Shown in pieces: positions 33,723 to 40,292 of a stretch of DNA of 64,000 nt (positions within the stretch are counted from its first letter, which is position 1; each line of letters opens with the position of its first letter). The notes beneath the pieces were generated by a model. The model saw nothing but the letters and a program-made list of their open reading frames with translations. It was not told where the DNA came from and made no database searches. The position numbers and the translations under genes were made by a program. The stretch is taken from sequence record MK250017.1. One strand, given 5' to 3'.

Positions 33723-34100
33723 TTAAAGTTTCTCTACCAATGTATCAAGATTATCTATAGTAATTCCTTGAACATCGAATTCTATTTTATTATCATTAAT
33801 ATTTTTTACAGTTAATACACTATAATCATAATAAATCTTATCACCTACTGTAAGTTCAGAAGCTTTAACCATTTTAGATTCACCATAATTATGAGTTTCT
33901 CTACGGAATTCATCCATACCTTCAATTGTAATTGGACAAATAGCTTCATAATGTTCTAATATCCATTCTTTACTACAATTGCCAGATACAAATTCAGGAG
34001 CACCATAGCCTTTTGGCAATCCTAAATAGTCCTTTACTTTAGACATATTATCTACATATTCTGATGCCTTATGCCACTTTATATTATTATTTGTATTCAT
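33723..34100 (-). CDS. Hypothetical protein (putative early gene)
   Basis: 125-aa ORF downstream of a TATCTTTG promoter motif at 34141-34148. Confidence 0.65.
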   Translation of the reverse strand: MNTNNNIKWHKASEYVDNMSKVKDYLGLPKGYGAPEFVSGNCSKEWILEHYEAICPITIEGMDEFRRETHNYGESKMVKASELTVGDKIYYDYSVLTVKNINDNKIEFDVQGITIDNLDTLVEKL

Positions 34101-34140
34101 AATCTTTATTTTTTAATTGTTTATTATTTCATTAACAATA

Positions 34141-34148
34141 CAAAGATA
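34141..34148 (-). promoter_or_regulatory. Bacteroidota sigma-A type -7 promoter element
   Basis: Minus strand (TGTG)TATCTTTG matches the TAnnTTTG consensus; about 40 nt upstream of ATG 34100. Confidence 0.7.
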
Positions 34149-34223
34149 CACATTTTATTTCAAATAAAAAAATCTTGGATAAAAAAATATCCAAGATTTA
34201 AAATGATAATTTAAAAATAATAA

Positions 34224-36431
34224 TTAATTATATGTATTTTCATACTCCAATAGTTTTTCCTTAGCATATTCTATTGTTATATGAAGTTGTTTTTCATCAG
34301 TTGCTGGCATTTTATACATATCATCAGATAATAATGCTTCTACAATACCTCTTAAACCTCTTGCACCTAATTTATTCTTTATTGATAATTTAACAATATA
34401 ATCATATACATCATCATCAATAATAAGTTCAATACCATCTAATTCAAATAATTTTTTGAATTGTTTTATAATTGCATTCTTAGGTTCAATCAATATTCTT
34501 TTCAAATCTTCTTCTGATAATGGATTAAGATATGTAATAATTGGAAGACGTCCAATTAATTCCGGTATTAAACCAAAATTCTTAAAATCTTCAGCATTTG
34601 CATATTTAAGAATATTATTATTTTCTTTATCTTCTATATATTGTTTATTCTCATCTTTAGATATAAAACCTAATGAAGATTTATTCATACGTCTTTCAAT
34701 AATTTTATCTAAACCTACAAAAGCGCCTCCACAAATAAACAAAATATTTTTTGTATCAACTTGAACCATTTTTGCATCAGGATGTTTTCTGCCTCCCTTT
34801 GGCGGAACATTTACAACAGTACCTTCAATAATCTTAAGTAACGCTTGTTGAACACCTTCACCTGAAACATCTCTTGTTATAGACGGATTACCTCCAGACT
34901 TTCTTGCAATCTTATCACAATTACCAGTAACAGTAACAAAATTATTTTGACGAATCATTATCATACCGCTAGGAACAGTAACACAATATACATCATCAGT
35001 AAAATCTTTATATACTTTTAATAATTTACTGTGTTGAGACATATATTTTTTATTTTTTATTACACAACAATATGAAATATTATATCCTTTTTTATATCTA
35101 TTATGAATAGAACAACTCATACCAGAAGTATGAGCAATAGTTTGTATAAATAACATTTCATCTAATTTAGAACTTGTAAAATATATATTATCATTATAAT
35201 AATTTAATAATCCATCCCAATATCTTAATTCATTTAAGAATAATTTCTTTTGTCTTATAGATGCGGTTATTAAACAATCTAGACATAATGTTTTCTTTCC
35301 ATCCTTAAAAAATGGCATATTAGATATATCACCAAAATAAAAATTATGGTAACTATTTTTTTCATTAAATGTATATGTATATTTTATATGTAAATTATTT
35401 AATATTTCATTTAATCTATTATATTTTCGTTCTTTTTTAACGGTTAAATAACCATATTTACCATTTTTTATACAACCATCTGCAGCAAATGCCACTATAA
35501 ATTTTAACATATCATCAGATATATCTATATCATTTCCGTCAAAAATACCTGTAACCGGGAAATCATATCCTTGATTTAATGATTTTTCTGCAATTACTTT
35601 TTTAATTATATATTTATCTCTGTATTTGCCATGACTAATAACAACTCTATTATGATTTGGTGTAGATGTATGTATTATTTGACCTGTTTTTGAATTTTGC
35701 AATGATAATAATCCATTTAAACACTTATGCTTTACTATCCTTTCAGAATTTACTAATGACATTGTGCTATCACTATTCCATTGCATTATCTTTGTAGAAT
35801 CTGTTAAATCTTTAAAAGAAATAAAACCATTTTCCGTCATTACTTCAGTATTTCCATCAAAACATTCATCTAAGAATACTATGCCATGTTCTGCTTTCTT
35901 AACATCATAATCACATGCTTGGAGAAGTCTTGTAATAGAAGTTTCTACATCATCACCTACGTAACCTGCTTCTGTAATTGAATTGCAATCTACTATGCTA
36001 ATAGGCACATCTAACATTTTTGCAATTGATTTCACTAATAACGTTTTTCCAACACCAGTTTCCCCACAAAGTATGCAATTTGACTTCTCAATTTCAACAT
36101 CATCAAATCCTTTTTGCTTTATTCGTTTATAATGGTTATAAACTGCAACCGCTAATCTTTGTTTTGCTTTATCTTGCCCAATAACATATTGATCTAGGAA
36201 TTCTTTAATCTCTGTAGGTTTCTTTACATCATCTTTATGAAATTCATCTTCTGGTATAAAATTTGTATTATGATTAATTATACTAAGATTCATATTATAT
36301 ATTTGATCACAACACTCATTACATATACTACCAAATTCACCATTAAATAATAATGCAACATCTTTTTTTGTTTTACCACAAAATGAACATTTGTTTTCTT
36401 TATTTGTATCTTTATCTTTCTTAACTGCCAT
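34224..36431 (-). CDS. clpX: ClpX ATPase interrupted by an intein
   Basis: N-terminal CSFCGK/CNECC zinc-binding domain, YVIGQ, KSN, Walker [15 protein letters not shown], Walker [36 protein letters not shown]. Confidence 0.95.
34920..35864 (-). mobile_element. Intein (315 aa) with LAGLIDADG homing endonuclease
   Basis: Begins CFDGNTEV after Walker B DE; TSTPNH block B; FAADG and YWDG endonuclease motifs; VYCVTVPSG block F; ends VTGN before +1 Cys (CDKIARK). Confidence 0.9.
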
Positions 36432-36548
36432 AATTAAAAACTAAAACTTAAATAACTATAATAACAACATATATTATATATTATGTAATAAATAAAGTTT
36501 AAAAATAATACAAATAAATAACTAAGAACAAATTTATTAAAAAAAAGA

Positions 36549-37931
36549 ATGTAGACCATAAAAATTAAATATACAATAAACGATAATGATAAATTATTGC
36601 TTAATGATTATATTAGACAGTATAATCATGTATATCGTGTTGCATTTAATAATTTATAGTCACATAAGAAAAATAAATTATCCGAATTAACAAATTTAAA
36701 CAATATAGATTTATTAGATAGTTGGTTTATATAGTCTGCTAATTATGAAGTGAAAACTTTATATAAATTAGTTGGTGATAAAAAAGTTATATTTGGTGGA
36801 AGAAAAAACTTTATAAAAAGATGTTAGAATAAGATTTCATATGATGAATATAATTCTTATAGATTTCAACCATTATGTAGTTATGGTGAAAAGAAATCAG
36901 GTACGAAATCTGTTCATGGAAATAGAAAATTTAAATTATCAGATGACCTAATATTTATAACATTAAAATTAAAAGAAAGAAAAATTAAAATTAATCTACC
37001 AAAATATTTACATTCAAATATCAAATATATACTTAAAAATGTATATGTACACCAAATATTAGATGATACACCTATTACATATAAAATAGATTATAATTAT
37101 GTATATATTCAGTTTGATGAATCTGTAATTTTAAATAAAAATAATAATTTAGATAAAATATAGAATCGCGTATTATCATTAGATTTAAATCCTAATTATA
37201 TAGGTTGGTCTATAGTTGATTGGAAGTCAGAGAATGAATTCAATGTTATCAAATCAGGTGTTTATTCTATAAAGAATTTAAATGATAAAGTTTTTAATTT
37301 AAAAAATAAAGGTTACTCATCAGATTCTAGTGAAAGAAAATATATTTCAGATAAGCGTAATTTTGAGACAATATAGATAGTAAAGAATATAGTTAATAAA
37401 TCTATATATTATAAATGTCAACTTATTTCTATAGAGGATTTAAATATTAAATCTTCAGATTTTAATAAAGGTAAGCGACTCAATAAGTTAATTAATAATT
37501 CATGGTGTAGAAATACATTTGTAAATAATTTAACTAAAAGATGTAATATTCATAATATGAAATTATTAAAGGTTAAACCAGAATATTCAAGTTTTATTGG
37601 TAATTTCTTATATCGTTCATTAAATTTACCGGATATGATATTGGCTTCAATAGAAATAGGAAGACGAGGATATGAATTTTATAATCAATATATAAGTAAA
37701 GTAAAAGAAATTAAAAAGAATATAATAAAACCAGATCTAAATATGTTTAATAGATTGTATCTTAAGTCGTTGGAAGAATTTAAGTTACAACCAATATACA
37801 AAGATTTGATTGAATTATATTACTTCTTCAAAAAGTCTAAAATGATGTATAGACTTTCTATAGATTAGTTTAATCTATAGTTTTCTAGCTTATTTTCGAA
37901 TACTTCATATATAGGGTATTTTTGTTTTTAA
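36549..37931 (+). CDS. TnpB/Cas12f-like RuvC nuclease, 460 aa (code 15)
   Basis: Open from ATG 36549 to TAA 37929 with about 8 TAG; RuvC-I SLDLNPNYIG, RuvC-II ISIEDL, RuvC-III-like PDMILAS; N-terminal MQTIKIKY...YNHVYRVAFN. Confidence 0.7.
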
Positions 37932-38046
37932 AATTATACATAATGATATAGTTTATTAAAAAACATTATAAAATAAGTACATTATAGTCAAAAATTTGTT
38001 AATTGTTTATTTTATAAATAATAAAAGTAATCAGGTAATTAAATAT

Positions 38047-38244
38047 ATGAAAAATAATAAAAAGTCTCCTATTAAAAATAAAAATATAAAAGGAAAAATA
38101 GGTTCTGAAGGCGGTTATTATATTGATAACTGTCCTGTTTTAATTCCTAAAGAAAATATTAAATTTTTTACTGCAATGCAAAAAGCATGTTCAGTCAATC
38201 CATATGGAAATTATGGAAATGCATATAATAAGAAATTATTGTAA
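38047..38244 (+). CDS. Small basic hypothetical protein
   Basis: ATG 38047 within the track ORF; ends TAA. Confidence 0.5.
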   Translation: MKNNKKSPIKNKNIKGKIGSEGGYYIDNCPVLIPKENIKFFTAMQKACSVNPYGNYGNAYNKKLL

Positions 38245-38245
38245 T

Positions 38246-38292
38246 AAAAAAGAAGATATAAGTTTTTCAAAATTAACTTATATCTTCTTTTT
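38246..38292. terminator. Bidirectional terminator between convergent genes
   Basis: aaaaagaagatataagtt/aacttatatcttcttttt inverted repeat. Confidence 0.7.
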
Positions 38293-38313
38293 ATTTTATA
38301 TATTAATTTGTAA

Positions 38314-38862
38314 TTAAAATTTTAAACCATTCATCATTTCAAAAACCTTAATCTTATTATTAATTCCATAAATAATATTATCAATAGTTGAAATAGTATC
38401 TTTCATATATTTACAAAAATTATCTAATAAATCTACTGATTCTTTTTCTGCTGACAACTGAGATTCTATTTGTAAATTAATAGCACTTTCATTTGTATAA
38501 CGAATACCAGAAGATCCTGATTTCAAAGCTAAATATATACTTGATGCTTTTGTTTTATAATCTCTTGTTTGTTTACTTAAAATTTTTGCTGTTCCATAAA
38601 ATAAATCTATTGCTTCTTGTCTTTTCAAATAAACTTCATTCATTAATCCATCTATAGATTTAAGATCTTTCATACGTTCATTAAGAGACTTTATAATATC
38701 AGTCCATTTATCCTGTAAATTTGTTAATGAATTTTCCAAAGAATTCTGCTGTTGTGTATTTGTTTGTACAGATGTATTATTAACACCAGAATTATTTTGA
38801 ATTGAATTATTATCTATATTATTTATTGTATTATTATCTTGCTGTGTATTTTCTTCATTCAT
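38314..38862 (-). CDS. Helical protein, possibly UvsY-like recombination mediator
   Basis: All-helical 182 aa; C-terminal ...DLLDNFCKYMKDTISTIDNIIYGINNKI loosely resembles the UvsY C-terminus. Confidence 0.35.
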   Translation of the reverse strand: MNEENTQQDNNTINNIDNNSIQNNSGVNNTSVQTNTQQQNSLENSLTNLQDKWTDIIKSLNERMKDLKSIDGLMNEVYLKRQEAIDLFYGTAKILSKQTRDYKTKASSIYLALKSGSSGIRYTNESAINLQIESQLSAEKESVDLLDNFCKYMKDTISTIDNIIYGINNKIKVFEMMNGLKF

Positions 38863-39150
38863 ATAATTAAAGAACTATTCTTTATACATTATATATATAA
38901 TAAAAAATAAAGTCTTAAATGAATAATTTAATTAAAATCATATTTTAAAAATAATTTCAATCTCTAAAATGATCTACCTTCTAAAAAAGAAAGAACNNNN
39001 NNNNNNNNNNNNNNNNNNNNNNNNNNNNNNNNNNNNNNNNNNNNNNNNNNNNNNNNNNNNNNNNNNNNNNNNNNNNNNTTTAAATAAAATTTTTATTTAA
39101 TTTTTTAAATATCTATCATTACCTTAATATCTTAATATTAATTATACTTG

Positions 39151-39515
39151 AGTTTTGTGAAAAAGTCTACATTTTTGTGAAAAAAGTTTAATAAAAATTA
39201 AAAATAATTTATAACTAATTGATAATCAATAATATTTATATGATAATTTATACAAATTCTAAATAATATTAATAAAAAATACTTACATTTCCGAAAAACT
39301 TACCTTACTAAATTCATTAAATAAATAGAATAAAAATTAAATTAAAATTACAAATTTAAAAATAAAATTTTTCATATATTATATATAGATCTATCACAAN
39401 NNNNNNNNNNNNNNNNNNNNNNNNNNNGGACTTTTGGGGAAAAGTCTACATTTTTGAGAAATATTTTTAATAAATTTTAAAAATAATTTATAAGTAATTG
39501 AAAATCAAATAATTT
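39151..39515. repeat. Imperfect ~85-bp direct repeat in AT-rich intergenic region next to N gaps
   Basis: aaaagtctacatttttg(t/a)gaaa...taaaaataatttataa(c/g)taattga(t/a)aatcaa at ~39161-39230 and ~39440-39510. Confidence 0.7.
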
Positions 39516-39521
39516 AGATAT

Positions 39522-40292
39522 ATGAGCATTAGCAAAAATAATACAAAACAAGTAAAAACAGGTGTAGTTGAATCAATAGATGATCCTACATGTTCTGGAC
39601 GTGTGAAAGTGAGAGTTGCTGGATTACATGATAACATAGCAACAGAGAATTTACCATGGTGTAATTATGCTGGTTCTGGTATGTTTTCAGGATCAGGTGG
39701 TGGTTAGATTTCAATACCACGTGTAGGAACAAAAGTAAGAGTAAGATTTGCATAGGATGATGTCAATGCTATGGAATGGTATGGTACAAATTCAATAGAT
39801 AGAAAATTATCAGAAGAAATTGCTTCAGATTATGAAGGTTCTTAGGTTCTTCTTTATGATTCTGAATATGATTTGTCTATCAAGTTTCAACCTGGTTCTG
39901 GATTGGCATTTTATTATAAAGGTTCATATATGCAAATGACACCTGATAATACTATAACTATTCATTATGGACCTGATGAAACAACAGGTGTTTAGATTTA
40001 GTTAACAGATGGAAAGGTTTATATATAGGCACCATAGCAGATTAATATAACATCTGGCAATGAAGTTAATATTGAAGGGAAGATTATAACTTTAAATGGA
40101 ACATCTGCTGTTCGTATAAAAGGAACAACACCGAATACATGTGCTGTTAATGCGACACAACTTATGACATTGTTATAGACAATGGCAACAAATATAGATA
40201 CAAAATTAGGATAGTCAAAATCTGGTATTTGCGCTGCTACTGTTTCCGGTTCTAAAGAGAAAATAATGAATCAACATATCCTTTATATTTAA
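39522..40292 (+). CDS. Baseplate hub/spike protein, gp5-like OB-fold, 256 aa (code 15)
   Basis: TGVVESIDDPTCSGRVKVRV..LPW..GGGQISIPRVGTKVRVRF; the conserved pattern continues straight through TAG 39705. Confidence 0.8.

Follow-up and report, generated by a model that had tools for sequence, protein, structure and literature searches.

A predicted homing-endonuclease intein at the Walker B motif of ClpX in the Prevotella megaphage Lak-A1

Mycobacteriophages carry inteins of 312–317 amino acids (aa) in the recombination directionality factor (RDF) gp51 of phage Bethlehem and in the TOPRIM proteins of cluster A1. The gp51 intein spliced to completion in Escherichia coli, its nuclease was toxic on cloning, with solely an inactivated mutant being clonable, and splicing became slower when its penultimate Gly was replaced by His (Kelley et al. 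2016, PMC5050341). Here, we describe a relative of these inteins in clpX of Prevotella phage Lak-A1, a gut megaphage of roughly 540 kb with a G+C content of about 25%. The window, i.e., the whole stretch analyzed, is the opening 64 kb of the Lak-A1 genome (MK250017.1, identity 100%), and the insert occupies positions 34920..35864 on its minus strand (945 nt, 315 aa, precursor residues 190–504). It belongs to the same family as the mycobacteriophage inteins and has the same size, with Cys1, a T-x-x-H motif, a V-[YW]-C block F, a T-G-N end, and a predicted LAGLIDADG nuclease, but identity is only 22–28%. The site differs as well, being the Walker B motif of ClpX instead of a metallophosphoesterase motif (gp51) or the sequence EGE/xD (TOPRIM; slashes mark insertion points), and the +1 residue is Cys in Lak ClpX and Ser in Bethlehem gp51.

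Our reading, with a probability of about 0.88, is that Lak-A1 clpX carries a functional, horizontally mobile intein of Hint + LAGLIDADG architecture between the catalytic Glu of Walker B, which we take to be E185 of E. coli ClpX, and the next residue. From its sequence and structural model, the insert is identified as an intein of this architecture because three independent lines of evidence agree, namely natural empty sites, fold, and family. An earlier note, made from the letters of this DNA alone, had placed a 315-aa insert between DE and CDKI, starting with Cys-Phe, ending with Gly-Asn, and carrying two LAGLIDADG motifs, and both its coordinates and these features match our results exactly.

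Closely related phages provide the empty sites. Lak-B1 to B9 encode a 418-aa ClpX without intein that reads FLDEIDKIARK, and a Lak-A-like contig (P0192/L004, hereafter L004) is also intein-free (DEIDKI), with extein DNA 96.3% identical to that of Lak-A1. The sole difference at the junction is GAG ATT in L004 versus GAA/intein/TGT in Lak-A1. Since alleles with 96% identical flanking DNA miss exactly these 945 nt, the insertion is real and not due to chance.

The fold was assessed via an AlphaFold2 model of the insert, for which a 67-row alignment served as input and which reached a pLDDT of 97.2 and a pTM of 0.93. Foldseek matched the whole model to TliVMA (E 1e-16), PI-SceI, PhoVMA, and PI-PfuI, and the central domain to I-DmoI and I-Tsp061I (E about 1e-5, TMt about 0.6), while the best match by VIA-align was again TliVMA (Z 23.0, 301/315 residues aligned). 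The Hint fold is present in the prediction, with matches to solved inteins at Z up to 23, and the earlier proposal of a LAGLIDADG homing-endonuclease intein that interrupts Walker B of a phage ClpX holds, both folds being predicted with very high confidence. PI-SceI, TliVMA, PhoVMA, and PI-PfuI likewise consist of a Hint domain into which a LAGLIDADG nuclease is inserted (Z 20–23 over 284–301 of the 315 residues), but share just 9–18% identity with the Lak intein. They end in His-Asn, are canonical class 1 inteins from archaeal or yeast V-ATPase or polymerase genes, and are larger (361–537 aa) with extra DNA-recognition regions. At the sequence level, the insert alone had no match among PDB sequences by phmmer, and a profile of eight sequences restricted to the intein gave only spurious matches in PDB (angiopoietin, uL13); no solved intein was aligned usefully at the residue level.

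Two other candidates were considered for the insert and ruled out. A group I intron or other RNA-level element does not agree with a continuous in-frame open reading frame (ORF) that is predicted to fold as Hint + LAGLIDADG. An assembly chimera does not agree with the identical structure in six independent Lak records and many metagenomes.

All parts of the intein lie on the minus strand, as do the other clpX features given below. The Hint N-lobe (35553..35864, intein aa 1–104) contains Cys1 of block A (35862-35864) and Thr68 (35661-35663) and His71 (35652-35654) of block B. It is followed by the LAGLIDADG homing-endonuclease domain (35010..35552, intein aa about 105–285), which has fold matches to I-DmoI and PI-SceI. 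Motif 1 of this domain (FAADG, intein residues 118–131, 35472-35513) has its acidic residue at Asp129 (35478-35480), and motif 2 (YWDG, intein residues 207–219, 35208-35246) at Asp217 (35214-35216). In the Hint C-lobe (34920..35009, intein aa 286–315), block F reads VYCVTV with Cys294 at 34983-34985, and block G reads FVTVTGN (34920-34940), comprising Thr313, Gly314, and Asn315. The codon after the intein is TGT (34917..34919), which encodes the +1 Cys, residue 1 of the C-extein, and which corresponds to ATT (Ile) or CTG (Leu) in empty alleles. The insert thus runs from Cys-Phe to Gly-Asn and is followed by Cys, and the junction residues for splicing are all there (Cys1, Thr68-x-x-His71, Asn315, and Cys+1).

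Family membership was established with an exhaustive HMMER search using the insert alone, which returned 3244 cluster representatives with an E value of 0.001 or less, 1209 of them at E<=1e-10. Of the 150 best matches, almost all were an internal full-length segment of a larger protein, and Pfam Intein_splicing was found on some relatives. The cluster A1 TOPRIM inteins (Turj99/Switzer) matched over their full length (28% identity, E 3e-30), the one in Turj99 gp53 having Cys1, VYC, and TGN/C. The Bethlehem gp51 intein, with Cys1, VWC, and TGN/S, matched the family in hhalign with a probability of 99.1% (E 5.6e-19, 297 columns). By these comparisons, the Lak-A1 ClpX intein is a member of a phage intein family already known from cultured phages, where it occurs in primase and other replication genes. 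By analogy, the experiments on the gp51 intein may be taken as the best available guide to the Lak copy.

Residue counts for the family come from 182 members, which were excised and aligned. Cys1, His71 of block B, and Cys294 (V-Y-C, block F:4) are invariant (182/182), and Thr68 (180/182) and Asn315 (181/182) nearly so. The acidic residues of the nuclease are conserved in about 96% of the family (Asp129 in 176/182, Asp217 in 174/182). The +1 residue is Cys in 154 members, Ser in 23, and Thr in four, and the residue preceding Gly314 is Thr or Ser in 153 (98 and 55, respectively) and Cys in 16. The Lak-A1 ClpX intein lacks the penultimate His (block G:6) and has Gly314 instead, as the earlier note had seen. 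Gly is also found there in 177/182 members, so the missing His is a family trait and not decay. A penultimate His is common among inteins but not obligatory, and the intein of Chlamydomonas eugametos ClpP (Ceu ClpP) also has a penultimate Gly.

In the mechanism that we propose, clpX would be translated as a 735-aa precursor with an interrupted ATPase site, and the Hint domain would draw both junctions together. Cys1, perhaps with Cys294 assisting or acting as a relay, would be joined to the N-extein by a thioester, after which the N-extein would be taken over by Cys+1 and Asn315 would cyclize. The products would be a 420-aa ClpX with DECDKI and a free 315-aa intein. During co-infection, the LAGLIDADG endonuclease of the free intein would cut an intein-less clpX (GAT GAG ATT GAT AAG), and repair from the intein-bearing copy would install the intein along with its flanking GAA and TGT codons. 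As the TGT codon would be borne by the repair tract, Cys would come to stand at +1 in place of Ile.

Several points weigh against a functional intein. Two curated models scored below their cut-offs, namely intein_Nterm (TIGR01445; 20.8 bits, cut-off 24.5) and Pfam LAGLIDADG_3 (18.4 bits, cut-off 22.5). The insert has no His at the penultimate position or in block F, and Cys takes the place of Asp at F:4, so the chemistry cannot be read from the standard class 1 rules. For the Lak-A1 copy, we infer splicing, DNA cleavage, and the initiating Cys from the sequence and the model. Finally, the ligated ClpX would carry Cys instead of Ile after the catalytic Glu, and its tolerance of this exchange is a weak point.

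Mobility is indicated by where the family occurs. The sampled members have two main homes, the Toprim active site of primase-helicases (EGE/CD, about 90/182) and the Walker B motif of ClpX-type AAA+ proteins (DE/CDK, about 40/182), and further hosts include ribonucleotide reductase (RNR), RecD-like P-loops, DNA polymerase, NAMPT, RtcB, and PhoH. Among 50,697 phage records, the family intein was found in ClpX only in six Lak-A and Lak-C records, while in metagenomes about 40 clusters (90% identity) carry it at the same ClpX site, on contigs of up to 533 kb. In Lak-A1, the copy in clpX is the only one of this family in the genome. Other intein-like matches in MK250017.1 (Pfam Intein_splicing, TIGR01445) lie at about 347.6 kb, 377.9–379.9 kb, and 410.1 kb, and some of them are interrupted by stops.

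The ClpX Walker B inteins form one group in a FastTree phylogeny (local support 99), consisting of 36 ClpX inteins, three nested MCM inteins, and one from another AAA protein. The MCM helicases in question (P0028, P0051, and P0053, from metagenomes) carry the intein at their own Walker B motif (IIDE/CDKL), with a support of 98 for their position among the ClpX inteins. Judged by sequence, this nesting apparently reflects a jump between non-orthologous AAA+ genes that have DE-x-DK in common. Similarities of inteins and exteins are also discordant, since one relative (P0002) has an intein 87% identical to that of Lak-A1 and exteins only about 53% identical, whereas at the syntenic locus of a remoter Lak-like phage (P0010) extein identity is about 73% but intein identity only 56%. 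This discordance indicates horizontal movement of the intein.

The ratio of nonsynonymous to synonymous substitution rates (dN/dS) between Lak-A1 and the P0002 contig (L021) is 0.135 overall, 0.105 in the Hint part, and 0.172 in the nuclease domain, which indicates purifying selection on both activities. Among Lak-A1, Lak-A2, and Lak-C1, the clpX intein sequence is 98–100% conserved. This selection and the fact that near-identical Lak alleles differ in whether they carry the intein are together what one expects of an active homing element, and the Lak-A1 clpX intein is very probably active and mobile.

As for the mechanistic class, class 3 inteins are defined by the absence of a nucleophile at position 1 (PMC2807308; PMC7891396), and the Lak intein, with a Cys1 that the whole family shares, is therefore not class 3 by definition. 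Of the class 3 signature residues, Cys at F:4 is present as Cys294, although this is an assignment by blocks and not a residue-level superposition, made from the aligned blocks, from where the strands lie in the model, and from a 67-row profile match to AceL NrdHF. The Thr at G:5 is present as Thr313, while the Trp at B:12 is replaced by Arg73, the family having R, L, M, or I at this position. Among inteins with the class 3 Trp-Cys-Thr signature (B:12, F:4, G:5), 3/37 have Ser or Cys at position 1 (Tori et al., PMC2807308), and Cys is the second most common residue at F:4 (Mills et al.). The AceL NrdHF class 3 split intein (PDB 6zgq; PMC7891396) is the closest solved Hint domain by profile (E 9e-6, with no other solved intein below E 0.01) and the best structural match among mini-inteins (Z 18.9, root-mean-square deviation 2.1 Å, 144 residues; others <=16.1). 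It shares with the Lak intein the F:4 Cys, the G:5 Thr, the lack of His at F:13 and G:6, and a residue other than Trp at B:12 (Met in AceL). It differs in that it begins with Ala1, occurs naturally in split form, has its GIY-YIG nuclease encoded by a separate gene, and follows a proven class 3 route (PMC7891396), whereas the Lak intein is one contiguous chain with an invariant Cys1 and an internal LAGLIDADG nuclease.

The invariance of both Cys1 and Cys294 across the 182 sequences suggests that both matter. A class-1-type start by Cys1 is most likely in view of the class 1 assignment of the gp51 intein by Kelley et al. (PMC5050341), and a relay or class-3-like route is a minority possibility. 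A wider proposal would have the family bridge classes 1 and 3, with a three-thiol relay from Cys1 through Cys F:4 to Cys+1, or with Cys F:4 as the first nucleophile, and with redox-sensitive maturation. It draws on the invariant Cys1 and block-F Cys, the Thr or Ser at G:5, the Gly at G:6, the mostly Cys +1 residue, and the fact that the nearest solved relative is the class 3 intein AceL NrdHF; we nevertheless regard it as rather unlikely. If true, maturation of ClpX, primase, and MCM would be redox-sensitive in infected cells.

Somewhat less likely still is that the intein acts as a conditional switch, in which splicing, e.g., via the redox state of Cys1, Cys294, and Cys+1, would time the appearance of active phage ClpX during infection. 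Its position lends itself to such a role, as an insert at the catalytic Glu should leave the precursor ATPase-dead; the intein must leave before ATP can be hydrolyzed, and splicing would be a precondition of ClpX activity. All three thiols are invariant or almost invariant, splicing of the class 3 intein Msm DnaBi1 is reversibly blocked by a disulfide of its block-F Cys (PMC6195587), and disulfide-bonded precursor conformers have been described for the related Bethlehem gp51 intein (PMC5050341). Against this stand the sporadic distribution, with close Lak relatives being intein-free, the movement of the intein between unrelated clpX, MCM, and primase genes, and the purifying selection on the nuclease domain. 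These are the signature of a selfish mobile element, for which a regulatory role is not required. Moreover, oxidative gating has no obvious trigger in a host that is a gut anaerobe, and redox control of ClpX maturation through three thiols in the phage of an anaerobe is speculation by analogy.

The mobile-intein reading also bears on how Cys came to stand at +1. The earlier note had assumed that a phage ClpX already reading DECDKI made the site invadable, which we consider very improbable. Every occupied ClpX site does read DE/CDK, and splicing needs a +1 nucleophile according to established intein chemistry. However, no intein-free DECDKI allele was found among the relatives scored, with DEIDKI both in Lak-B and in L004 despite the 96.3% identity of its extein DNA. 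Cys followed DE in none of the 112 intein-free close ClpX relatives with a readable Walker B motif, which instead had Ile (n = 59), Leu (n = 48), Val (n = 4), or Met (n = 1). The same family is found at the Toprim sequence EGE/CD, where the T7-type motif has a hydrophobic residue as well, which fits with co-conversion of flanking DNA.

In the nearest empty alleles, the codon after DE is ATT or CTG, while the occupied ClpX alleles available at the DNA level (n = 5) all have TGY at +1, preceded by GAA in four including Lak-A1 and by GAG in one. TGT at +1, accompanied by a switch of the -1 codon from GAG to GAA, was confined to intein-bearing alleles. Simple, precise loss of the intein from an allele with TGT would not yield ATT, and the empty alleles are therefore best read as uninvaded. 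Going by these alleles, the +1 Cys is best explained by co-conversion along with the intein, or by selection when the site was invaded, and by the same logic this would apply to the Toprim sites (EGE/CD). The DNA common to both sites, GAR/TGY GAY, may contribute to recognition by the nuclease. Leu (CTG, e.g., GAG CTG in L005) replaces Ile (GAG ATT in L004 and Lak-B) in about half of the intein-free Lak alleles; the CTG codon could be neutral or could alter the homing site.

That the insert is a decaying or splicing-dead remnant, leaving clpX as a pseudogene or a precursor only, is likewise very improbable, for although it has a penultimate Gly instead of His and scores below threshold on curated intein models, Gly-Asn is the norm of the family (177/182) and a member with this end splices completely (PMC5050341), the catalytic positions and both nuclease acids are intact, dN/dS is 0.1–0.17, the ORF is open over 2.2 kb in an AT-rich genome, and the sequence is almost unchanged in Lak-A2 and Lak-C1.

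What is new here is the host gene and the site, not the kind of element, which belongs to a known phage intein family. No report of a natural ClpX intein or of this Walker B insertion site was found in the literature searched. The earlier note overstated how unusual a protease-chaperone is as an intein host: the site is unreported in that literature, but about 40 metagenome clusters are occupied and there are precedents in Clp and AAA+ proteases. Among ATP-dependent proteases, inteins in ClpP of C. eugametos and in Lon of Pyrococcus abyssi (Pab Lon) are cited in PMC4031507; they are precedents for this kind of host system, but interrupt different proteins (the ClpP peptidase and LonB) at different sites.

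The known homes of inteins now include the protein-quality-control ATPase ClpX, at its catalytic Walker B Glu, and occupation of this site is widespread among huge phages from the gut and the environment. The locus would also offer a clean natural example of a +1 nucleophile that was imported by co-conversion and did not pre-exist. One intein lineage appears to hop between the non-orthologous ClpX and MCM (DE-x-DK), with Toprim (EGE-x-D) perhaps as a more distant target. The family is also of interest to intein chemistry, being large and easily assayed and joining Cys1 with class-3-type residues in blocks F and G.

The host gene is a ClpX by all of its sequence features. The precursor ORF (34224..36431, 735 aa) ends with a TAA stop and has no in-frame TAG. 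Two NCBIfam equivalog models, NF003745 (517 bits, cut-off 359, E 4e-155) and TIGR00382 (494 bits, cut-off 371), match it in two stretches that break at the insert, and Pfam identifies the ClpX zinc finger, AAA_2, and the D2-small domain. The N-extein (35865..36431, 189 aa) comprises the C4 zinc finger (36312-36389), Walker A GETGVGKT (36042-36065), the pore-1 loop GYVG (35955-35966), and the end of Walker B, FLDE (35865-35876). Its alignment with solved ClpX stops at residue 185 of the 424-aa chain 8e91_A, and the insert thus directly follows the Walker B Asp-Glu. The C-extein (34224..34919, 231 aa plus stop), which begins with CDKIARK, contains GEGVQ (34848-34862), the RKH loop (34782-34790), an IGF-like LGF loop (34665-34673), and sensor-2 GARGLR (34350-34367). 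Together, these sequences mark the host protein as a ClpX with zinc finger, Walker A and B, GYVG, RKH, an IGF-type ClpP-docking loop, and sensor-2.

A ClpP homologue (PF00574, 239 bits) is encoded in the Lak-A1 genome at MK250017.1 117683-118225, about 82 kb from clpX. A second, weaker ClpP-like match (86 bits) with one in-frame TAA lies outside the window at MK250017.1 154990-155406 and may be an interrupted or degenerate clpP paralogue.

Many other Lak phages (L005:1348-4248 and L006, on contigs of about 533–538 kb, among them) have a clpX that is fractured at the P-loop, GVGK/T, and by its sequence this break looks like a split intein. A first ORF consists of the N-extein followed by a 32-aa intein N-fragment (CISPDTLV...), and a second one opens with an intein C-fragment (about 123 aa) ending in SHN/T. 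Between the two lies a free-standing ORF of 390 aa without a Pfam match, which has six in-frame TAG codons (TAG is recoded as Gln in Lak phages). The arrangement resembles the fractured genes described by Dassa et al. 2009 (PMC2677866). Walker B reads DEIDKI, DELDKI, or DEMDKI in all 88 of the P-loop-fractured alleles, and the Walker B intein was found in none of them (0/88). If the break is a split intein, clpX would be a hot spot of two different intein invasions in Lak megaphages, one at Walker B and one at the P-loop.

Within the window, the cumulative GC skew reaches its minimum at about 34000-40000, where skew sign and coding strand switch, so that clpX is located at a strand switch or an origin-like site of the genome. 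The lowest G+C content, about 21%, is found at 36–40 kb of the window. Sequencing runs from 14 studies contain this stretch, and six of those runs are recorded as RNA. In the intein-free relative L004, a gene for an IS605 OrfB/TnpB (Cas12f-like) protein is located near clpX, upstream of it (L004:1-312).

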